From sequence record OR805292.1: 64,000 bases of DNA. The stretch is one strand, 5' to 3'. Position 1 is the first letter of the stretch; each line of letters begins with the position of its first letter. Below, in pieces: positions 8,613-63,385 of the stretch. The notes beneath the pieces are model-generated. The model worked only from the letters and a program-made list of their open reading frames with translations, had not been told where the DNA came from and did no database searches. The position numbers were made by a program, and so were the translations under genes.

Positions 8613-9282
8613 GATTTTCTGCCCTTTTCTTTAATGTAACATACAATTCGTAACATCTAGATACTATTCGTTTCCATACTTTTGGATTTTCTTTCTTTAA
8701 GTATGTAAGCTGATGACCTTTTGCGAATTTTTCTATATTATCTAGAAACCATTCTTTGGATGGTATTTCTTTTGAAGATCCCCAATACTGCAAAAATATA
8801 ACCTTAAGATCATTTAATAATTCGGCTATTCTTGCATTTATTTCGTATTTTTGATTTAAATATTCTTTATGTTTATCTGAATTGTTTGTATGTTTATATA
8901 ATAATGGATTACCCTTAGAACTATCTAATGCATGTTGTAATTCATGAACTAAGGTATTTGTGTATGTTATATCATTTTTATATGAATCCGGACCTATATC
9001 AAAAAGTGCTATGAGATTTTTGCCATCAGTTCTTTGAATAAAAGCACCGTTGTATTGTTCTGGATGCTCACTTGCATACGGACGTATTATTAAATCGGAA
9101 ATATTATTTAAAATAGGATACTTATCGAAATATTCTTGTTTTATTAAATCTTTTAGTTTGTATGAATTGTATATTTTATTTTCTGCATTCTTTTCTATAA
9201 CAAACCATATTATTTTTGCAATAGTAGATAATATTATACTTTCGCTTGCCTTTTCTGTTAGATTAAATTCTAAAATTTTCAT
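8593..9282 (-). CDS. HExxH zinc-peptidase-like protein, probable virion internal protein
   Basis: VHELQHALD...YEINARI; N-terminus MKILEFNLTE. Confidence 0.75.
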   Translation of the reverse strand: MKILEFNLTEKASESIILSTIAKIIWFVIEKNAENKIYNSYKLKDLIKQEYFDKYPILNNISDLIIRPYASEHPEQYNGAFIQRTDGKNLIALFDIGPDSYKNDITYTNTLVHELQHALDSSKGNPLLYKHTNNSDKHKEYLNQKYEINARIAELLNDLKVIFLQYWGSSKEIPSKEWFLDNIEKFAKGHQLTYLKKENPKVWKRIVSRCYELYVTLKKRAENRATKRN

Positions 9283-9288
9283 TATATC

Positions 9289-9483
9289 CTATCCGTTATG
9301 TTTCCAATACTGGATAGATTTTTCTTGTTTAGAAACCCAGTCTTTAGAAGGTTTTCCTTTACCCTCGTAATACCTAAGGGGCTTCCCTGTCTTTTTAGAA
9401 ACAAGTGCCCATTTTCCATTTATATGTTTTAGTTCTTCGTCTAATTCCGACGATTCTAGTATGCATATTTCGGAAAGTTTCAT
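9289..9483 (-). CDS. Small basic protein, probable head internal protein
   Basis: N-terminus MKLSEICILE, Lys-rich body, first gene of the minus-strand trio. Confidence 0.7.
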   Translation of the reverse strand: MKLSEICILESSELDEELKHINGKWALVSKKTGKPLRYYEGKGKPSKDWVSKQEKSIQYWKHNG

Positions 9484-9514
9484 AATCTTTAATCCTGTAT
9501 TATATGTATATGCT

Positions 9515-9540
9515 TATTTATCGCATTATATAACTAAATA
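9515..9540. promoter_or_regulatory. Divergent T4-late-like TAAATA promoter elements
   Basis: GATAAATA on - (9515-9522) upstream of 9483 and CTAAATA on + (9534-9540) upstream of 9569. Confidence 0.5.
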
Positions 9541-9568
9541 GTGTTATCTTGTAAAGGAGGAGTTTTCC

Positions 9569-10549
9569 ATGGGAAGACCTATTAAAAGCGATTGGTTTGG
9601 TGAAAGCGAAACGGGCCAACCTAAGTTAAGCATATATGCTAAGTTACCCGGTATGACTAATGCTGCCGAGGGTTTTATAGTAGCACAAAAAGGTACTCGT
9701 AAATATAAAGTAAACGTTAACGACACTATAGGCGATGTCTTTCTAGTTAATTCTAAATTAGCTGATTTAAACGAAGGCGAAGGGGTTATATTCGTAGGCG
9801 AAGTAGATAGTGACATAACTGTTTCTAAAATACAACAATACGGATTAGTAGCAGTTAATTCCACTGGCGAAATTCAATTCGGTGGACAAACACAATGGGT
9901 AGTAGACGAAGAAACAGGATTACAACCCGATACTAGTTCTGTCCCGCAACCAAGTAATCAAACGTTGCTTGCAAATGCCAGTACTGCATTTAAGAAAGAA
10001 AATGGAACATTATGGACTGGTTCGGGAATACCGGCATCAGGAATGTTAGTATCTAAAAATAATATAATCGAACTTGCATTGTCTGCACACTTGCGCGGTT
10101 CTGTTATTAACAGAAAAATAAACGACGACGGATCGTATGATATATCTCTAACTTCTTCAACACAAGATTGGGCGTTTGACTATTGTGTAGGTATTGTATC
10201 GCCGGCAGTAACAGATATAACTACAGAGTACGACGTTGTTCTTACTGCATATTGCAATTCAGAAGGTAAAGAACAAAACCCGGCTGTATTTACTTTAGCA
10301 AAAGAAGATACATATGTATGGAAAAATACAGTTCTAGATGGAGATATTACTGACAGTGCATCCGATCCTGATAATCGGTGTGTTCAAAATACTCTTAGAT
10401 ACACGTTCTTTAAAGATAATGTTGTGCCTCCCGTAGGTGAAGAAGATCCTATAGTAGGTACATTTATTATCAAATTAGAAGCAACCCATAAAACTAACTT
10501 TAATACTGTTAGTGCAAAAATGATAGTTCGTGTAACAAAAGATTTTTAA
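9569..10549 (+). CDS. Probable virion structural protein
   Basis: AAGGAGG SD, late-type TAAATA element, beta-rich acidic composition, own terminator; no catalytic motif. Confidence 0.6.
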   Translation: MGRPIKSDWFGESETGQPKLSIYAKLPGMTNAAEGFIVAQKGTRKYKVNVNDTIGDVFLVNSKLADLNEGEGVIFVGEVDSDITVSKIQQYGLVAVNSTGEIQFGGQTQWVVDEETGLQPDTSSVPQPSNQTLLANASTAFKKENGTLWTGSGIPASGMLVSKNNIIELALSAHLRGSVINRKINDDGSYDISLTSSTQDWAFDYCVGIVSPAVTDITTEYDVVLTAYCNSEGKEQNPAVFTLAKEDTYVWKNTVLDGDITDSASDPDNRCVQNTLRYTFFKDNVVPPVGEEDPIVGTFIIKLEATHKTNFNTVSAKMIVRVTKDF

Positions 10550-21493: not shown

Positions 21494-22132
21494 ATGTGGC
21501 AACAGCGTTGGGCATTAGTTGGAGACTCTATCCAGGCATGGGTATTAGAAAATAGTAATAGTGGTATTATTCCGAGGGCAGATAAACTCACTGCATCTAT
21601 GATACCGTTTAAAGTAAACGCATCTATACAGAACGTGTCTGTCCCGGGCATGCGTTTAGCAAAAGGAACTGATCCTAGTGATCCGTTTGATATTTCTTCA
21701 TTAAGCAAATTACATGGATTTTTCGGTTTAAACGGGGTTGTGTGTACATTAGGTACAAACGATTACGGAAGTCCATACGTAACTACAGTCGATTATTTTC
21801 ATGCTTTAACTGATTTTTTGAATGCAGCAATATCGTTAACCATACCTGTTGTAATTGTTTCGCCTATATGGCGACAAGATAAGGATACATCTGTATTAAA
21901 ATACGACGGAACGACTAATGTACTTGCAGATTTTCAAAATACAGCACAATGGGTTACTTCACTTGTTTCTGCTAATAATAGTAATGTCTATTTTATAGAT
22001 GGGAAACAAGCACCTGTTCAAAATGCAACATATTTTGGCGATGGATTGCATTTAAATGCTGCCGGACATGCTAAATTTTGCACATGGTTAGTAAATGAAA
22101 TGAAATCCAAAAATCTTTGGCAACAATATTAA
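21494..22132 (+). CDS. SGNH/GDSL hydrolase (esterase/deacetylase)
   Basis: Block I VGDSI, block III LGTND, block V DGLHLNAAGH; AGGAG SD; ACTAAATA at 21461. Confidence 0.9.
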   Translation: MWQQRWALVGDSIQAWVLENSNSGIIPRADKLTASMIPFKVNASIQNVSVPGMRLAKGTDPSDPFDISSLSKLHGFFGLNGVVCTLGTNDYGSPYVTTVDYFHALTDFLNAAISLTIPVVIVSPIWRQDKDTSVLKYDGTTNVLADFQNTAQWVTSLVSANNSNVYFIDGKQAPVQNATYFGDGLHLNAAGHAKFCTWLVNEMKSKNLWQQY

Positions 22133-22168
22133 TAAAACATTGCCCGCTAATGCGGGCAATGTTTTATT
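22131..22168 (+). terminator. Intrinsic terminator
   Basis: AATAAAACATTGCCCGC-taat-GCGGGCAATGTTTTATT. Confidence 0.88.
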
Positions 22169-22238
22169 GTATTTTTATTTTTCTTATGCTATTATACAAA
22201 TAATAAATAATGGACGTTTAATAACAAGGAAATGTTTT

Positions 22239-22469
22239 ATGAGTTCAGAATTTGATATAGATGACAGCGGACTTGCTGAAACCCACGAACAAATTGTAGA
22301 AAAAGCTGTAAGTAAAATACGAAAAGAAATGGCAAGAAATTCTGGCTATACCGAATGTATAGATTGCGGAGAAGAAATAGGAGAAGAAAGAAAACGTATA
22401 CTACCAAGTGCAACAAAATGTGTGGAATGCCAGTCGTTGTTTGATCTGAGAAATAAGTTATACAAATGA
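22239..22469 (+). CDS. TraR/DksA C4 zinc-finger protein
   Basis: CIDCGEEIGEERKRILPSATKCVECQ, acidic N-terminus; start moved to the ATG after an AAGGA SD. Confidence 0.9.
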   Translation: MSSEFDIDDSGLAETHEQIVEKAVSKIRKEMARNSGYTECIDCGEEIGEERKRILPSATKCVECQSLFDLRNKLYK

Positions 22470-42097: not shown

Positions 42098-42282
42098 GTT
42101 TCCAAATTCAATTTTAGGCACAAACTCGGATCCGCATTTGCATTTTGCATTTACATTTTGTGTTCTGAGTGTATATGCAAAATGCAATCGCGCATGTTGT
42201 CGATGCATTGGCTAATCTTTTATTTTTGATAGTTTAGAAAAGATTAAGAACAGAAACTATCTGTAAATTAATAAAAATAACA

Positions 42283-42596
42283 TTTACATTACATACACAT
42301 ATGCATATACTATATACAAGTTATGCGCTGTTGCATACGTAAATACCTCCTATGTTGTTTAGATATGTCGATTCTGGTATAACCAGATAGACCTAAGGAT
42401 GATGCTAGTGATTCCTTAGTATTGTATATTCTAGCTGAGTATAAAGAGTAAGGGGCTTTATACAAATAACAATTCCTTAGGCAAGATATACCGCTCCGTT
42501 GTGCTGACGAGCATAATTTGCCCAGATACAGAGCACGTGACTGGTCTGAGGAGCATTTATATCAGAAAGGCAGACTTATGTTTGCCTTTCTTTTTG
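42283..42596 (+). ncRNA. Candidate ~280-nt sRNA including its promoter and terminator
   Basis: TTTACA-17-TATACT (42283-42311), internal hairpins, AGAAAGGCAGAC-ttat-GTTTGCCTTTCT plus T-run; no ORF inside. Confidence 0.55.
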
Positions 42597-42708: not shown

Positions 42709-42826
42709 GCAAATAAGACTAATTCTTATTTGCGTTTGTAATTTCATTTATTATTGCAAATAAGACTAATTCTTATTTGCGTTTGCAACGAAAAAGAATA
42801 TGCAAATAATAACTAATCTTATTTGC
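42709..42826. promoter_or_regulatory. Cluster of three 25-bp GCAAAT-N13-ATTTGC palindromes (Fur-box-like)
   Basis: 42709-42733 and 42756-42780 identical (GCAAATAAGACTAATTCTTATTTGC); 42802-42826 is a variant. Confidence 0.8.
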
Positions 42827-43122: not shown

Positions 43123-43205
43123 GTATACAAGCTTAAGGGGTAAGTGCCCCGAAAGTGTAGTAAGTAAACAACATAATCCTTCCATCAGCTACAGAGGTAT
43201 ACAAC

Positions 43206-43910
43206 ATGTCCGTACATATCACTCGTCAACGTACCGACAAACAGCACGTCCTGGCACTGGCAATCAACGGCGTGGTCATCGGCCAGACTATGGCTACCTA
43301 CACCACCCCGAGCAAGCGCACCTGGTCAGCGACCGCCGAAGTCGAACTGGCAGACGGCACCGTCGTACAGTTCGAGCAGAAAGAAGTGTTCAGCGCGATC
43401 CGCATCACCCGCGAGATCGAGCAGGCGCTCGACGGCAAGGAACTGGCGGCCAAGTACACCCCGGAACCGAAAGTTCCCGGGCAGAAGGGTCCGAAACCGC
43501 TCACCGACGAAAGCCGACTCAGCAACGCGATCGCGATCGTCAAGGCGGCCATCACCCACACCGGCTTCGACGAAGCTACCCTGGTGTTCGACGGGGTCGA
43601 CAAGGCCAACTTCGAGCAGAACAGCACTTCCGTCGGCAACAAGCTGCGTCGCCTGGGCTTCGTCTTCGAACTCGGCGCCGGCAAGGCGAACAGCGGCAAG
43701 GGCTTCCTGATCAACCGCAAAGCGCAGGCCGAGGCAGAAGCTGCCGAACGCAAGGCCAAGCGCGACGCCGAGAAGAAGGAGCGCGAAGAAAAAGCGGCGG
43801 CTGCCAAGCGCGAAGCTGACGAACGCAAGGCCAAGCGCGACGCCGAACGCGCCGAAAAGGTCGCTGAAAAGAACGCAGCGATCGCCGGGGCGGCGCAGGA
43901 AAGCAAGTAA
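43206..43910 (+). CDS. GC-codon protein with charged Ala/Lys/Glu-rich tail, possible DNA-binding protein; paralogue of 61898-62380
   Basis: GAGGT SD; shared N-domain (NGVVIGQ...VFSAIRI); duplicated ERKAKRDAE. Confidence 0.85.
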   Translation: MSVHITRQRTDKQHVLALAINGVVIGQTMATYTTPSKRTWSATAEVELADGTVVQFEQKEVFSAIRITREIEQALDGKELAAKYTPEPKVPGQKGPKPLTDESRLSNAIAIVKAAITHTGFDEATLVFDGVDKANFEQNSTSVGNKLRRLGFVFELGAGKANSGKGFLINRKAQAEAEAAERKAKRDAEKKEREEKAAAAKREADERKAKRDAERAEKVAEKNAAIAGAAQESK

Positions 43911-43925
43911 TTGCCCAACTGCGCC

Positions 43926-43952
43926 GAAAGGGGAGCAAATTGCTCCCCTTTC
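43926..43952 (+). terminator. GAAAGGGG-type terminator
   Basis: GAAAGGGGAGCAA-a-TTGCTCCCCTTTC. Confidence 0.88.
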
Positions 43953-46869
43953 TTCATGACCATATAATCTATATACTACTGTGTCTTTAACTATATTTTC
44001 TATATCAGCTAGTTTGTATTCAATAACTTGGTATTCTATGCCAGCGACACAATGCTGTTATATAGACATAATAACACGCGACGCTGATATTTTTATAACC
44101 TATCCATTTTATAATAACATACTTGTATCTAAAATTATTTCTAATACAATACCTGTAGGAAGTTATGAACACTATATTAGAGATATGTCGTGGAATAAGA
44201 AATGATTATATAACAGTCAATAATTTTACATATGACTACTATCTAGAGGTAAACACACCTGCGTTTTCTTTAATGATAATTATTCCGACAGTTCCTATAT
44301 TAGACAATACTTGCATTACTTTTATAAAAAAGTATTAATATGAATATATTCTTTATATCAAACGGTCTATCTAATATAATATATCACAAAGATAATTTGA
44401 TACAACATAATATACATATGATAGATATTGAGATTAATAATTCTACTGTTATTTGGCTTACATATTCTTTCAATATTACTAAAGTATCATTTAAATATAT
44501 TATCTAATTCATTTTCTTATTGTACGAATTGCAATTGCAAATTACTCTTATTTGTAATTGCATATAAACAATCAGTTGCTATTAAAAGTATTTGCTGTTA
44601 ATATATTATATAACAGTGCAATTGATATTTTAAAATACAGTGTGCAATGCATCTTACATGTATTAAAATTTGTGTGTTACTTGGTTTGCATTAATGATTA
44701 ATATACCTCTCTTACAGTACAAAACTAATACTATAGACAATTTGTTCGGGGGATCGTTCTCGAAAAGTATACAAGTGAGAGATAACAGTCTAATTATACT
44801 TGTTAGTTTTTATATAGAAGGTTCTAAATATAGAAAATTTGTATACAACAAAGAATACCTCGAAGGGATTTCAGCATATGCAAACAACAATCGTTAATGC
44901 CCTAAAATCTATTAATGTAAAGTATTCGGATATATTTTACACAAATGGTAATTTGTGTAATACTGTTACAATACGAAATATTCGCAAAAACGGTAAATTA
45001 GATTCGGCAGAACAAATTAATGTTGAATCAGTTGTGAGCAATTATTTGATTCAAAAAGATTTAAATTTGCCCTTTTCTATTCAATGGGCAAATAATGCTT
45101 GCTGTGAAGAGTATACTACACTTATTCTCTTCTTCAGAAAATAGTGTATGATTAGATTAAAAAGATATGTTCAATTGCATAGCATATACAGATTGTCTTA
45201 CTATGCGCACGGCATACATTTTAGCAAAACAAAGAAGATAATGCTTTACGTAGGAAACGCAGGTCCCGTACCCGTAACATGACAGTATATAGCGTTAAAA
45301 TGTGCATTTTTTGCACGATTTTGCGGGGTATGCGTTACAAGCAATACACACATACTGCTTTTAAAATGCATGCTTACATGCGCTTTGTAGGGGGTTTAAA
45401 ACATGCTTAAATTAGTTACCACTGTGCTATACAACGTCTGTGTAGCTTCGTTGATAATGATTGTGTTTGTATGTGGTATAAATTTAGTAATGTATATAGA
45501 TAACAATACTGACAATAATCCAGTTGTTATCTTTATTTCCCTTCTATCGGTTATTTGGGGCGTTGCGCGGATAAGCTATATGTTTGTTACTATCCAATTT
45601 CAGTCCAAGAAATAAAAGTATTGGTAACATATGATAGATAAAAACGGAAATACAGAAGACTTTGATTTTGATAAGGCATGCACTATAACTGATCTGTCTG
45701 TTCCTCTTCAGCAAAAAATACAATCATATAAATTAAATAAAATATTGGTTATGGTTGCAATCCTTAAATATTCGAATATAAAACAAGAAATTGGATGTTT
45801 CGCTATCATATGGGATCATATAATAAAAATAACAGTTGAAGTAAAATGCAATCCGTATGCAGAAACACACATACTCATGCATGCGCATGTATTTTCTAAT
45901 TCCGATTCATGTACTCATAGTGTATTGCTGAATTACAGAAACAAATATTTACCCACTAATTATTATAATTAATATGGAAGATATTCTTAAAATTGCTAAA
46001 CTAATCGGGTACGTAAACATACATGCAAATAAACATTTTCAGTATGTTTTTAACAAAGATATGGAACATGTATGTGTTAGTGCCAAGACTAGGACAAGTA
46101 TGAACGGAATAAAATACCTTTATGTAGTAATGAATATATATTATATATATTGCCATCAAGAAAGTGTTGCCGTTATATTAAACGAAGTAAACACTGATGA
46201 AATGCCTGTATTAGATAATCTTTATGCTAAACTTAATGATTTAGTTACACATAAATCTGTTATAAAATTTAAATATACAGAAATAACACAAGAACAAATA
46301 GATTTGTTGAATAATAGTGAAAGATATATAGTATATTTTGACTCTAATTTAGAATACGGAATAGCTTCGTTTTATTAATTTTGAGGAATATATGAAAAAA
46401 CAAACAGGTTTTACAGATTGGCCATTGATTAGTTTAGGTACAATTATTATCTTGTGTGTATGGGTATTAATTCTACAATATACAGAAATAAATGTACTAG
46501 AAGAAAAATGTAACAAAGTAGGTGGTATTTTTAATAACACCGTTTGCATACGGTCAGATGCAGTTATTAATTTAGATAAGGTAAAATAAAATGCCAAAAC
46601 TTTACGTTAACAAAAAACATGATACCATTTATCTTCAGTTAGATCATTTCTCATCTAATACTGTATCTCCAATTAATTACAACGAAGATGTAGAATATGT
46701 AATTGATAGGATCCGTAGTCTGCACAAATCCGGCTTCGGATTTAGTCATATGAATACTCTACAAGAATATCTTACGGCAAGAACAGAACAGGATAAGAAG
46801 TTTAAGCTTAAAGTAGAAGACTTCGAAGTAGTATCATTTAAGATTTAAAATTATACATAATCAAAGTAT

Positions 46870-46898
46870 TTGACATTTGATGTGTATACTAGTATAAT
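46870..46898 (+). promoter_or_regulatory. Perfect sigma70 promoter with no downstream ORF
   Basis: TTGACA-17-TATAAT. Confidence 0.92.
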
Positions 46899-46904
46899 TT
46901 GCTC

Positions 46905-47520
46905 ATGCTGTCGTAACAGCTACTTTGTTCCATTCACAAGCAGCTCTGTTCCATTATTGGATATTGGTAGTAGAAACTATCCCCATCGTGCCCACAGTAT
47001 TGTTCTGTTAGAGACAGGTTAAAGCATACAAAAGTGGGTTATTTAAATTATGATTTTGGGTGCTGAAGTATAGTCGTTAGACAAGGATATGTCTAATGTT
47101 GCAAAGGACTATGCGAAACGTATTATATATCTTATCCGATATTAGATATGTAATAAAAGGATGAAGCTCTGGTAGAAACAGAGTGTAATTCTTGCTTGTA
47201 TTTCACACGGATATACAAAAGAATATACACACCAACTTCAGCATTGATGTGAATTTTCTAGCATAGGTATATAACATCGATGTTCCGGGATTCATTGGAA
47301 ACAATGAGAGAATGATGTAATCTGAGGAAAAAGGTCCCCGCCTCGTCCATATTACGAAATGGTTTTGAGTACTTATGCCCTCGTCCTATATTGGCATATG
47401 GGTTTTATATTCTCCCGTAATTACGGGAGAATATAATTTCCTGAACCTACTTGGAAATGGACGCTTCTGCTGTGCTTCGCACAGCATCTAAGGGCCTTCA
47501 CCCTTACCGCTAAGAGCAAG
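46905..47520 (+). ncRNA. Candidate ~620-nt structured RNA
   Basis: Nested long-range helices (TGCTGAAGT/ACTTCAGCA, ATAGTC/GACTAT, GTCCAT/ATGGAC) and many hairpins; no ORF of 60 aa or more. Confidence 0.65.
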
Positions 47521-55131: not shown

Positions 55132-55422
55132 ATGAAAAATACACTGTGTCTCGTTGCATTTTTGGGTCTCACAGTAATAGCTCACACTTATGCAGCAGAT
55201 TCTGCAAATAAAGACGTGAGTACCCTCACTATGGAACAGGATCTAGAAACATATCTAAACGAAGAGTTTGGATTAACAGGGAAAGTTAATTGCAATAATG
55301 CTGTTAACGGAATGTTCGAATGTGTCATGCACGACGGACAAAAGAAATACATGTTTGCATGCAATGCAGAAGACAGTGTATGCATAGTAGTATCTGTCCC
55401 AATTAAAGGAATTCGGTTATGA
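55132..55422 (+). CDS. Exported Cys-containing protein
   Basis: GGAG SD; signal-peptide-like MKNTLCLVAFLGLTVIAHTYA; four Cys in the mature part. Confidence 0.65.
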   Translation: MKNTLCLVAFLGLTVIAHTYAADSANKDVSTLTMEQDLETYLNEEFGLTGKVNCNNAVNGMFECVMHDGQKKYMFACNAEDSVCIVVSVPIKGIRL

Positions 55423-55829
55423 AAAAAGCTCTTTCATGTGTAATAGGTATTATTGTTCTGTTACTAGGCGTATTTATGGTAGATAATCCTGCAATAGGAT
55501 TAATGCTAGGAGGGTTAGTAGGCAGTTATATTTTCAGCATAGGCGGAGTAATTCTATGTGTTATATCGTTTATGATATTTGCACTTGCCTTTGTTGAGAT
55601 GAAATGAATGATTTATTTAAGTATTTGGACATTTGTATCTATAATAGTATCGATATATCATAATATTTTAACTATAAAAATGCATAAACAGGTACTGTTG
55701 TATAAAGATTATACTTTTTATAAGGAAAGATTAGATTTTGTCTGTAATAGTTATATATTTTTCAATGTAATATTCTTCATTTTCATTGCATGCGTTACAA
55801 AATAGATCACAAAAAGTTTTAAAATTCAG

Positions 55830-56349
55830 TTTACAGCATGCATAGTTTTACGTATTATAAACACACAAAGCAATACAGCATAACGCATTGTAAGCAACAC
55901 TAAACGGGAGACACCGTCCCGCAAGCAGCCCGCCCGCGATGTTCGCGGGCTGCGGCAAACAGGTGTACAAGGTCTAGTAACGTGGAAGGCGCAGCATACC
56001 TTTCCCTAAATCGGAAATTGGTCAATGACGTACCTGCCCCTGGACACTGCTAGACCTTGCTGCTACAAGCGGGACAGCTACAAAGGTACACTGTATGTAT
56101 CTATGCTTTACCCCGCTTTGTAGCAGGTCTTAAAAACGGTCTACTGGCATATGCTTTAGTGCTAGTAGGAATCATTAACCTACAACTATTATATGCTTCC
56201 TGGAGGTGAAGAGTATGCCGCCGCAGCATTAAATATACATTATGATGATGATAATTATGAATGCCGAAACACCGCTTCGATTCGTTTAAAAGACAGATGT
56301 CTGAATCGAATGTTTTTGGGCAAAAAGGTCCCTTAGATGGGATTTTTTT
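55830..56349 (+). ncRNA. Candidate ~485-nt structured RNA including its promoter and terminator
   Basis: TTTACA-17-TATTAT (55830-55858); helices GTCCCGC/GCGGGAC, GCAGCCCGC/GCGGGCTGC, CAAGGTCTAG/CTAGACCTTG, GCTACAAAG/CTTTGTAGC; hairpin plus T7 at 56328-56349. Confidence 0.65.
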
Positions 56350-56363
56350 GCGGCTGCTAACTA

Positions 56364-56436
56364 GCAAACGCGAATTAATCTTATTTGCAATTTAAGAAAA
56401 ATACCAGTTGACTGTAGCTTGCTAACATAGTACATT
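56364..56436 (+). promoter_or_regulatory. 25-bp palindrome followed by a sigma70 promoter
   Basis: GCAAACGCGAATTAATCTTATTTGC (56364-56388), then TTGACT-17-TACATT (56408-56436). Confidence 0.8.
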
Positions 56437-56465
56437 TAACTCATAAATCCGCAGGAGTAGCAGTT

Positions 56466-58924
56466 ATGTCGCTGAAAAAGAAACTTTTAAATTCTGTGCA
56501 GATTAAATATTTCGGCAACATTTATACTTACATTTATGATGCCGTTTATGACGTTATTTATTTTGATAACCAGCAAATGTCTTATGCCGAATTTGAAGAG
56601 GCAGTAGACTGTAAGCTAGGAGAAGTTCTGTGAATGAATATGTTGATACACACAGAGCTAAAAGAATATTAATAATTTCTTCTATATGTTTTTTTGTAAC
56701 TGGCATTCTGATAGGATACAGCCTGGCGTCTAACTCTGAGTCTGCTTCGTTATATATGCAGTATAAAGAACTTGTAAAGTCTTGCGAAGCAGAATTGCCA
56801 AGAAATGAAAATTGCCAAGTAATCGTATATGCTATACCAACACCTGAAGTAGAAGAAGAGAAACTAGAAATACAAACAATTCTCAGAGGGGTCGAAATAA
56901 AATGAGCGTATACTGTAATTGCATAGCATGCGGTGGAGATGATCCGTATGCTGTATGTGAAAATGTGTTAATGGATATCCAAAAGCACAAATATAATACT
57001 GGTCCCAGCTGGGGGCTGGTAGTTGCGGCAGTATTGTGTTTGGTAGGAATGGGATTAGCAGGTAACGCAGCACTATCTGATAAAAAAGAAACACCATGCG
57101 AAACTACACAACAAAAATAAGAGGTGTATAATGACTGACAAAACAACAGACATGTTGGTAGATGAATTTCTGTGCGAGCGTGCATCTTTTTCTCCGTTTA
57201 GCGAAGGTGTTCATGCAGCTAAACTAGGGCAGAAATATACAGACTGCCCGTATACCAAAAATGAGCCGTATGAACGTAACGAATGGATTCGAGGACATCA
57301 AATGTGGCATGATTATTCTGTTCAACAATACAAATAATATTCAGAGGATATTATGAAGAAACTATCTATGTGCGATTTTGCCAAATGGAAGGCAAACTAT
57401 TACAGCACCAATAAATCCGGTCAGCCACTCCGTCTAGGACAAGCATTTATTAACGAATTTTCCGAACAGGGTGATATGCCTCAGCCAAATCTATATTATG
57501 AAGAAGACAATGCAACTGCTGAGCTTATCATTCTAGAAAAATACATTATATACTAAGGAAGTAGTAATGTATCTTGCACACCTATTCGCTTTGGTCCCGT
57601 CTATGTTTGCAGTATTAATTAATGCTGTCTTTATCAAATACGGTTTGGGACCTGCTGCTATAATAGTATTTATGGCATTAGTTGTAACTGTAACAGGAAT
57701 TGGGTCTGTAATAGATATGATGCGTGCATTGTCTGAAGTAGACAATATTATTGATAGATAGTATTTATGTATGCATAAGAGAACTTATGAAACTCAATGA
57801 AGTTACTACAATTTCTGATCTAGACAATATTCCTGTCACTGACAAATTTATAGTTGTCGGCGAAGATATGGTAGGTCTTGCTTTTATCGATAACGATGGA
57901 AAGCTAAATGATGGATTCTTTTTTGAGTGTACTTATACTCAGAATAAGGAACAAATATTTAAAGCTGTTCAACATTTAAAAAAACAAGTAGATGAATTAA
58001 ATAATTGTAATAAAGAGAAAGTTATAGCACATGTCATGCGAGCTCCCGAGTTTGCATATGTTTGGGTATATTTTGAACAAAAACAATAGTTCTATATTTT
58101 TGATATATGCAAACGCAAATAATTAGAATTTGCAGAATCTGTTACAAACTTTCTGTTTATATCAAATACAATCATGCTATAATAGTTTATAATAAAAATG
58201 TAAGCATACTATCATTGACAGAACTGCTGTTCCAATTAGTAAAGGGTTTCATTGAGCAGCATGACATCCGTGCCTACAGCAAGCACCAAAAGAACAAAAA
58301 TGAAGTTCATTCTTTGTCTAAAGATTAAGTTTGCTGAGAAATTTGATAAGAAACTTCAACTGCTTGATTATATCAATAGTGCATTTATCATGCATTGAAC
58401 AGAAACGAAGTACTCTTTTATCTACGAGGAAAAGCAAATGAAATACAAAATCATTCTTCAAAACCGTAGCAATGGTGTTGTCGCTGAATTTTCGGTAGAT
58501 AACGAAATCAATCCCGAGATCATGGATACTTCTATTATCGTTCATGAAGGGACGTCGTATATGTATACCGGCTCGGGTGGTTCTTACTACGATACCATTT
58601 ATTTTAGTGAAATATATAAGACCATTAACACGACAGACTTGTCGTTGCTATAACAGAAAACGCTTTACAATAGCTCTAAATGTGCTATTATGTAGTTGTA
58701 CATAAAACAACGCAGGAGATTATATCATGCGTAGCACACTCGGAGTAGAACATGCATCGAGAGAAATTCTTTCTGCATGGGTTGATGTAATGCAGCAACT
58801 CAACTGTGAGCATTTCTATAGCGAACTGAAAGACAATGCAGTTCGCTTAGATTTACAGGAATATATGTATACTGAACGTCTTGTTCAGTATTATACAGAT
58901 CTTCCAGTCACTAATGCTGTTTGA
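56466..58924 (+). other. Operon of small hypothetical ORFs, several membrane-associated; includes untracked 56466-56633
   Basis: AGGAG/GAGGT SDs, chained ORFs, terminator at 58956. Confidence 0.7.
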
Positions 58925-61897: not shown

Positions 61898-62380
61898 ATG
61901 TCTAATGTAAGCATCCCTGCTGTAACGGTAGAGAACATCGGCACCCTGCGCATCGTGCGCACCGCTAACAAAGAGGTCGGAAGTGTGCTCGACCTAAAAG
62001 TTAACGGGGTAGTAGTAGGGCAAGCTTTCCCGCTCTACAGCACAAAAACCCAGCGTAGCTGGAACGCGAGCATGCACGCTACCGTTAACGGCGTAGAGGT
62101 GCAGTTTGCACAGGAAGGCGTGTTCAGTGCAATCCGCATTGCACGGGCGTTCGAGGATGCAGTAAAGCATGCCGTTAGCAACGGCGAACAAGGGCAACCC
62201 CTCCCCGCGCCGGCGGCGGCAGAAGCGCAAGCAGAAGCGCAAGCAGAAGCGCAAGCAGAAGCCCCGGTAGCGCAGACCGAGGATGCGCCGGAGACCCCGG
62301 CAGCCGAAGCTAAGCCCGCCCGCAAAGGCGGCAGCAAAGGCGGCAGCAAAGGCGGCAGCAAAGGCGGCAGCAAAAAGTAA
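61898..62380 (+). CDS. GC-codon protein with (AEAQ)n and (KGGS)4 tail; paralogue of 43206-43910
   Basis: GGAG SD; NGVVVGQ...VFSAIRI shared domain. Confidence 0.85.
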   Translation: MSNVSIPAVTVENIGTLRIVRTANKEVGSVLDLKVNGVVVGQAFPLYSTKTQRSWNASMHATVNGVEVQFAQEGVFSAIRIARAFEDAVKHAVSNGEQGQPLPAPAAAEAQAEAQAEAQAEAPVAQTEDAPETPAAEAKPARKGGSKGGSKGGSKGGSKK

Positions 62381-62395
62381 GCGCTGCTAACACAG

Positions 62396-63385
62396 GAAAG
62401 GGGCAACTGCCCCTTTCCTTTTATGTCCTAGTTGTAAACGCAAATTAATCTTATTTGCATTTGCACAAGTCAATCTCCGGTTGCATTACTGCGGTAAGAT
62501 GTTAGTATATATGTAGCTATACGGAGTAATTGCTATGAAGCGCAAGTACCTAAAGGCACAGTTCGAGCATGTCAGTGCCGGGCGAGTTGCAAAAGAACTC
62601 GACGAGAAGTTCAATTTCGTTGTAGGCGATAATGTACACTACTGGGCCATCTTCGAAACTAATGTCAAACCCGAAGTTCTACAAAAGGCAATTCATGACA
62701 TGAACGGTGGTGCTTACTGCCATGCATATTCTATTCCGTATGAGGATGTAGAGGAGTATCTCTAATGCTCTACTATCGCGATGTTTATGCAGGTGTTTGC
62801 TGTTAAACTTGTATAGCCGGCACCAGGTCGCATATAACACGCCTAGCCCCATGCAAACTGCGGACATGATCCATTCACGCCTGCAGCGTATGTTCGAAGA
62901 ATTCGGTTGCAAGCCCGATGGTTGCTCTGCTAGCATGTACGAGGATAAGACGCACATTACACTAGCCTGGAGCAAGTAAATGGATATGTCGATTGTGAAC
63001 AAGCGCTTCGAGAAAGAACTAGCGCTGTTTAATGTCGAAGTTCTCAGTAAGCGCACAGTGAATCATATAACGAAACCGAACATCGAAGTTTCGTTCAAAC
63101 TAAAGGGTCATACTACTGAAGAAGAGATGACCACTGTTACTCAGCTCGCACGTCCCATTATGGAGTATGTAAGCGGACGTAGGGTGGTCTGGGCACATAC
63201 CGGTCTTTGGCGCTCAATGAAAGACGACCTCGAAGTAGCAGTGCTGACAATGAAGTTATCCAAACAATAAGAGAAAGGGGCAACTGCCCCTTTCCTTTTA
63301 TGTCCTAGTTGTAAACGCAAATTAATCTTATTTGCATTTGCACAAGTCAATCTCCTGTTGCATTACTGCGATAAGATGTTAGTAT
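62396..63385 (+). repeat. 113-bp direct repeat (62396-62508 and 63273-63385): terminator, palindrome, promoter
   Basis: 111/113 identical by manual alignment; period 877 bp. Confidence 0.95.
62535..63270 (+). other. Gene cassette between the 113-bp repeats (62535-62765, about 62765-62979, 62980-63270)
   Basis: GGAG SD and chained short ORFs. Confidence 0.7.

Follow-up and report, generated by a model that had tools for sequence, protein, structure and literature searches.

Stranded RNA sequencing (RNA-seq) of the Pseudomonas phage PA5oct, which uses the host RNA polymerase, led to the annotation of ncRNA002, one of four regions that are transcribed but contain no plausible open reading frame (ORF) (Lood 2020, PMC7318152). 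This RNA takes up 4.65% of phage reads early, 5.04% in the middle and 1.23% late in infection, its GenBank similarity extended to phage MIJ3 only, and the paper describes no structure, Shine-Dalgarno (SD) sequence, mini-frame or function for it (PMC7318152). In the PA5oct record (MK797984), it is entered as a "putative lncRNA" (EST35_0068, 21951..22401, + strand) and lies in the long terminal repeat, amid small early genes. Here, we analyzed the counterpart of this RNA in a 64-kb stretch of sequence record OR805292.1 (64,000 nucleotides in all, referred to below as the window). At positions 55830-56349 of this stretch, an earlier interpretation made from the letters alone (the sequence-only reading) had proposed either a novel structured non-coding RNA or a folded mRNA that sequesters a small membrane peptide.

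The 531 nt covering the locus matched the Pseudomonas jumbo phage Cassandra (genus Wroclawvirus) at 100% identity when a phage collection was searched by blastn, and the other matches were 10 records, all of them Wroclawvirus, at 93.8-99.1% identity. The resulting ortholog group comprises 11 records (93.8-100% identity over 531/531 nt), and neighbouring genes and strand agree among them. The PA5oct match runs over the full length at 93.8%, with the ncRNA002 annotation sitting beneath it, and the 12 tRNA genes described for PA5oct are also present in the window. Locus, flanking genes and strand are thus shared with ncRNA002, as are high early and middle transcription, the lack of an ORF and the lack of database similarity. 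The two copies differ at two short patches of strong divergence in the PA5oct record, one in a hairpin (HP2) and one in the AT-rich stretch after the mini-frame, and at 56132, where an extra A is private to Cassandra. The Cassandra RNA is a copy of the Wroclawvirus RNA published as PA5oct ncRNA002 and is already known as an object; because of that publication, the finding counts as a rediscovery. Of the earlier proposal, a structured RNA forming its own transcription unit holds up, on folding statistics and RNA-seq, while its novelty does not.

The ncRNA002 ortholog is a discrete and abundant early transcript

We aligned the assembled contigs of four public RNA-seq runs, which carry no strand information, to positions 55400-56800. 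In two runs, the summed word depth reached 2.6e5-1.0e6 across ~55917-56292 vs 2.5e2-1.4e3 in both flanks, and thousands of error-variant contigs were stacked on the RNA region. The other two runs contributed one contig each, spanning 55877-56273 and 55924-56331. Inside ~55880-56335, summed contig depth was hundreds-fold above the flanks, and the contig ends agree with those of the PA5oct annotation, which map to ~55877 and 56332. The sequence-only reading had named the absence of any discrete RNA as grounds for giving up its proposal; what we found is an RNA that accumulates at ~55877-56331 and that is a very abundant, discrete, early transcript. Directly upstream on the same strand (55419-55805) lie two small, very hydrophobic frames of 62 and 65 codons, the second of which is annotated in some sister phages only. 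Their expression in the RNA contigs is hundreds of times below that of the RNA.

The signals at both ends of the unit were present as the sequence-only reading had described them. TTTACA-17-TATTAT is the best promoter-like site within 55300-56900, and this exact pattern has a single occurrence in the window; promoter-like sites on the - strand here are weak only. Transcription probably starts at ~55865-55867. The GC-rich stretch was likewise borne out, with a GC content of 0.53-0.57 across 55850-56074 vs ~0.2-0.35 in the flanks. At the 3' end, a GGTCCC/GGGATT hairpin is followed by seven T residues (56343-56349) and then by a palindrome box. RNA depth falls ~100- to 500-fold across this terminator in the public contigs, and there is therefore little read-through. 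The palindrome box occurs in 7 copies in the window vs 0.02 expected. Copies of this 25-nt element, which reads GCAAATAAGA-N5-TCTTATTTGC and variants, are found at 42709-42826 (three in tandem), 48952, 53055, 56364 and 61439, typically between a terminator and the next promoter.

Searches for relatives outside the genus were negative throughout. No Rfam model matched at its gathering score, the best at E <=10 scoring 12-20 bits vs thresholds of 34-76, and no self-cleaving ribozyme in Rfam matched even at E <=10; ARAGORN detected neither a tRNA nor a tmRNA here. Blastn of the phage collection returned no match outside the 11 Wroclawvirus records, and tblastn with both flanking proteins returned the same genus only, apart from one marginal, partial match in P. 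fluorescens phage vB_PF_Y1-MI (36% identity, E 1e-3). We found no relative in IMG/VR, queried with two exact stretches and the two flanking proteins, or in JGI metagenomes, queried with two exact stretches, and no match in the PLSDB plasmids. In 401 sampled Pseudomonadaceae genomes, blastn gave chance matches of 20-35 nt, nearly all to the GC-rich 5' part around hairpins HP1 and HP2, and a 19-nt hairpin pattern hit random GC-rich genomes only. A covariance model of two long hairpins of the RNA (arms A and B) had no match in 151 sampled genomes, and in the Cassandra genome it retrieved only itself (E 3.5e-50). No paralog was found elsewhere in the phage genome by blastn or covariance model, and opposite-strand matches in that genome, as possible antisense targets, were <=17 nt, at chance level. 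We also rejected an origin of the GC-rich core in the host or in a mobile element, with nothing found in the 401 host-family genomes, the 151-genome covariance search or the plasmids. As judged by these sequence searches, the RNA is an orphan, within no described RNA family and found in one phage genus.

Predicted fold, conservation and reading frames

Relative to dinucleotide shuffles, the predicted fold of the whole RNA has a z-score (z) of -6.5 on the + strand and -5.1 on the - strand. For arm A, arm B and the 3' domain alike, 0/300 shuffles were as stable. Modelling thereby shows a GC-rich helical core, consisting of two hairpins and two abutting arms, and a 3' domain whose predicted stability is far above that of shuffles (Table 1). 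The four helices singled out by the sequence-only reading are all exact complements of 7-10 bp: 55925-55933/55945-55953 (9 bp), 55968-55977/56050-56059 (10 bp), 56077-56085/56116-56124 (9 bp) and 55916-55922/56069-56075 (7 bp). The minimum-energy fold includes the first two; the other two are alternative helices, in competition with pairings of greater stability. In the PA5oct record, HP2 is replaced by unrelated GC-rich sequence. HP2 can also pair over a long range with the mini-frame, through 8 bp in Cassandra and 12 bp with a bulge in PA5oct, which by a rough count is at chance level for GC-rich sequence.

The ten distinct Wroclawvirus copies are ~99% identical. What variation there is tends to avoid pairs: outside the PA5oct patches, only 9/20 variable columns are paired vs 66% expected (one-sided P 0.047, on the Cassandra minimum-energy fold). 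The variable positions of arm A (56006, 56019 and 56042) all fall in loops or bulges, and the single one of arm B, 56068 (A/G), is still paired with U. All four point changes in robust helices (56068, 56307, 56326 and 56328) retain their pair via G-U or A-U, including the C-to-T change of PA5oct at 56307, which leaves a G-U pair in the 3' hairpin. Over 6.5 kb, Cassandra and PA5oct diverge by 4.6%, and the differences come in patches. Their RNA core (55960-56229) has 3 differences in 270 nt, and because this is about as much as in the better-conserved coding bins, we see no sign of exceptional constraint. The GenBank record of PA5oct departs from the nine other Wroclawviruses in two dense patches (window 55934-55958 and 56231-56259). 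All four RNA-seq runs carry the majority-type sequence at both patches, not that of the PA5oct record; the patches thus rest on one record and are either real local replacements or errors in it.

Both short frames listed by the sequence-only reading exist, a 47-codon ATG frame starting at 56193 and a hydrophobic TTG frame, and reading of the sequence revealed no ribosome-binding site belonging to either. Only Cassandra has the hydrophobic C-terminal half of the TTG frame. This phage alone carries the additional A at 56132 (A5 vs A4, in the linker after arm B), and it is because of this one-base insertion that a 50-codon hydrophobic frame exists; 9/10 copies stop after 33 codons. A frameshift interrupts the 47-codon frame in PA5oct, and the sole SD is located downstream of this frame's ATG. 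A 44-codon ATG frame (56261), which the Cassandra record lists as a coding sequence (CDS), lacks an SD and continues past the terminator to 56395, beyond the 3' end of the RNA. Its length is kept in PA5oct via a paired insertion and deletion, and its changes (~7 non-synonymous and 4 synonymous, by our count from the alignment) are as expected without selection. The alignment thus shows no longer reading frame to be conserved. An mRNA for a small protein, encoded by the 47-codon, 44-codon or TTG frame, would fit the existence of these frames, the retained length of the third, and the three or four tiny CDSs placed here, on both strands, by automatic annotation in Cassandra and sister phages. 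We nevertheless regard it as very improbable given the frame defects just described and given four records in which careful manual annotation leaves the region CDS-free. The idea of a folded mRNA that sequesters a membrane peptide, as in type I toxin loci, was abandoned for the same defects: the frames are broken in relatives and have no ribosome-binding site of their own.

Table 1 Features of the ncRNA002 ortholog and its immediate surroundings, in window coordinates (z, stability of the predicted fold relative to shuffles).
Feature	Position	Strand	Evidence or remark
Sigma-70-type early promoter, TTTACA-17-TATTAT	55830..55858	+	10/12 consensus positions; invariant in 10 phages
Transcript, ~485 nt, ortholog of PA5oct ncRNA002	55866..56350	+	RNA contigs, PA5oct annotation
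A/C-rich 5' leader	55866..55904	+	z -0.4, no significant fold
Hairpin HP1, 5-bp GC stem, 7-nt loop	55905..55921	+	Predicted fold; invariant in 10 phages
GC-rich hairpin HP2, 9-bp or alternative 8-bp stem	55925..55953	+	HP1 and HP2 together, z -2.9
Arm A, 92-nt irregular long hairpin, 12-bp closing stem	55968..56059	+	z -4.2
Arm B, 67-nt long hairpin, abuts arm A	56060..56126	+	z -5.1
A/U-rich middle segment, weakly folded, holding the candidate ribosome-binding module and the variable AT-rich patch	56129..56265	+	z -1.4
Perfect 8-nt SD, GGAGGTGA	56202..56209	+	Complementary to 16S rRNA 3' end
Putative 5-codon mini-frame, ATG CCG CCG CAG CAT and stop (MPPQH)	56215..56232	+	8 nt past GGAGG core; 10/10 phages
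AT-rich patch	56231..56259	+	Alignment; strongly diverged with 1-nt deletion in PA5oct
3' hairpin, 8-bp outer stem, inner 4-bp stem	56276..56310	+	3' domain including terminator, z -5.0
Intrinsic terminator, A-tract, GGTCCC/GGGA stem, T7	56320..56351	+	Sequence, predicted fold
Palindrome box, between terminator and next promoter; cassette frame, outside the RNA	56364..56388	+	Sequence
Promoter-like site of downstream gene block, TTGACT-17-TACATT	56408..56436	+	9/12 matches

Candidate mechanisms

The weakly folded middle segment contains an SD, GGAGGTGA, that is the exact complement of UCACCUCC at the 3' end of 16S rRNA in sampled Pseudomonadaceae genomes, where the 16S ends read ...GGATCACCTCCTTA. 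There is one copy of this octamer in the window, both strands included, and GGAGG occurs 12 times on its + strand. The mini-frame that follows stops at TAA in Cassandra and at TGA in PA5oct, the diverged patch beginning at the second base of the stop. By sequence, this arrangement has what characterizes a minigene, namely a strong SD, a start at 5-9 nt, few codons and a stop. Taken together, the evidence shows a self-contained early unit in which a host sigma-70-type promoter drives transcription and an efficient intrinsic terminator ends the RNA, and it leans modestly towards a ~485-nt RNA that functions as such and is not the message for a conventional protein. Stable helical domains would make the RNA long-lived and would flank an SD-AUG site, ideally spaced, lying within its sole loosely folded segment. 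The RNA would then dock host 30S subunits or ribosomes during host take-over, either as a minigene whose pentapeptide is translated or as a decoy or stabiliser that binds ribosomes. Ribosome docking, to which the SD-AUG module points, is the mechanism that we tentatively favour, and we hold it as a possibility rather than an expectation. A bolder form of it, which we think quite unlikely, would make this the most abundant early RNA, its nuclease-resistant body displaying the SD and a Pro-Pro minigene that captures 30S subunits or drives futile short translation. If that were true, futile translation, via demand on EF-P and peptidyl-tRNA drop-off, would bend host translation towards the phage, and this RNA-based mode of take-over would be one undescribed for any phage.

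Several observations weigh against the overall explanation, ribosome docking included. According to the partition function, the SD has a predicted unpaired fraction of only 30-40%, since CCGCC in the mini-frame is a possible partner for GGAGG, and the "minigene" could be merely the two sides of a weak hairpin. Conservation of the mini-frame carries no information when the RNA in its entirety is ~99% identical across the genus, and the codons of the mini-frame are ordinary for the phage, with CCG making up 32% of Pro codons. We had also considered a mini-frame that uses host-only codons, which was rejected because CCG is common in phage genes. Support for the fold is thermodynamic only, because 0/158 pairs predicted by RNAalifold show a compensatory double change among the ten nearly identical copies. 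Finally, contig depth is a rough measure of expression, although the contrast still spans two to three orders of magnitude.

Nearly as likely as ribosome docking is a sponge or decoy: the helical core (HP1, HP2 and arms A and B) would bind and titrate a protein of the host as the phage takes over, and the SD-like sequence would be incidental. Examples of such a protein would be RNA-binding regulators, nucleases, RNA polymerase and defence sensors. The high abundance of the RNA in early and mid infection, its unusually stable and invariant long hairpins, and the lack of both a convincing phage antisense target and a protein-coding frame are all consistent with titration. However, the signatures of known Pseudomonas sponges are absent: GGA occurs 8 times vs 5.9 expected (90/500 shuffles reach 8), ANGGA, AAnAAnAA and ARNx4 each occur 0 times, and Rfam gave no match to 6S, RsmY/Z, CrcZ or others at E <=10. 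It is also conceivable, if unlikely, that the RNA is a stable by-product without function, its promoter and terminator framing a decayed gene or acquired GC-rich DNA and its hairpins resisting RNases. Restriction to one genus, the missing compensatory changes, a core divergence of 3 differences/270 nt vs 2-5 per 200 nt in many flanking bins, and two internal patches freely replaced in PA5oct would all follow from such an origin. Yet spending ~5% of phage reads on a useless RNA would be costly, and promoter, arms, SD module and terminator are intact in all ten isolates, which come from Europe and Asia. A GC content of 50-57% amid flanks of ~20-35% further argues for selection for structure, and the 401 host-family genomes and the plasmids offered no source of acquired DNA.

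Two other roles draw on the less structured parts of the RNA or on its position. Its unstructured 5' leader and middle segment would suit a base-pairing regulator, like a small RNA (sRNA) or RNAIII, that acts on host or phage mRNAs via the leader, a loop or the A/U-rich middle. The RNA ends in a terminator hairpin with a U-tail, which is the usual Hfq-binding 3' end of Hfq-dependent sRNAs. Such regulation nonetheless seems rather improbable, as the RNA has no long complementary stretch elsewhere in the phage genome, the 20-35-nt matches in the 401 Pseudomonadaceae genomes are chance ones, mostly to the HP1/HP2 part, ARN and A-rich Hfq motifs are absent, and 485 nt is long for the class. We give hardly any credence to a role at the DNA level, in which the terminal repeat would hold a replication origin and the transcript would form an R-loop or serve as primer there, like ColE1 RNA II or T4 origin transcripts. 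An efficient terminator that releases a discrete, free and abundant RNA speaks against this, as do a GC skew without a shift at the locus and the absence of any origin-like repeats found there; what would fit is the early and middle timing, the order of GC-rich structured RNA followed by an AT-rich stretch, and an RNase H-like protein encoded by PA5oct (PMC7318152). The transcript itself is real and already known.

Neighbouring features and described counterparts

Other parts of the window also carry candidate RNA units. The segment at ~42282-42596 appears to be orthologous to PA5oct ncRNA001, the second early RNA of very high abundance, with a TTTACA-type promoter, a ~280-nt transcript and a hairpin plus T-run terminator at ~42566-42596, after which come three tandem palindrome boxes. 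It contains ACCTCCT, the anti-SD end of 16S rRNA, which is complementary to GGAGGT of the ncRNA002 ortholog; CCTCC occurs 6 times on the + strand of the window. A long ORF-free stretch at 46870-47520 has a near-consensus promoter, TTGACA...TATAAT (~46870-46898), and several hairpins. These two other non-coding early RNAs in the window (~42318-42596 and 46905-47520) share no sequence with the ncRNA002 ortholog. GC-rich islands (0.57-0.67) with an A-over-T skew lie at 43200-44000 and 62000-62400 in this AT-rich genome, and the former coincides with a 234-codon frame whose position and length match a virion structural protein gene of PA5oct (record 9167-9871).

PA5oct, Paride, which is known for its ability to kill dormant cells, and related Wroclawviruses are under development against Pseudomonas aeruginosa, and this RNA is among their most abundant early products. 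Learning its partner, be it the ribosome, a regulator of the host or a sensor of defence, could bring to light an RNA-based mechanism of take-over or anti-defence. Beyond the published annotation, our analysis adds a map of the domains and a set of negative searches, discards both the CDS calls and the toxin idea, and offers the SD-AUG mini-frame as a handle for experiments.

Among described systems, type I toxin-antitoxin loci (hok/sok-like) likewise combine a highly folded RNA, small frames and long-range alternative pairings. Here, in contrast, the hydrophobic frame is unconserved and there is no evident antisense partner; the PA5oct record, annotated from directional RNA-seq, has the + strand only at this locus and no antisense RNA. 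GOLLD and ROOL are, like this RNA, large or abundant, highly structured, non-coding and phage-borne, a likeness of architecture only, and the 6S, RsmY/RsmZ and CrcZ sponges act by titrating protein. The Wroclawvirus RNA differs from these in having no Rfam match at E 10, no enrichment of GGA, CA or ARN, and a distribution confined to a single phage genus. In Staphylococcus aureus RNAIII, the encoded peptide has 26 aa and the base-pairing targets are defined, whereas the frame here has 5 codons and we found neither a target nor homology; both are abundant multi-hairpin RNAs of ~500 nt with a short frame, putative in our case, in a less structured part. The bar minigenes of phage lambda and the pentapeptide (E-peptide) minigene of E. 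coli 23S rRNA act through the ribosome or peptidyl-tRNA. The phage RNA bears no sequence relation to them; its SD can pair with its own codons, it is a 485-nt structured phage transcript, and translation of MPPQH is putative. What it has in common with these minigenes is a strong SD, a start and 2-5 codons set within an otherwise non-coding RNA.

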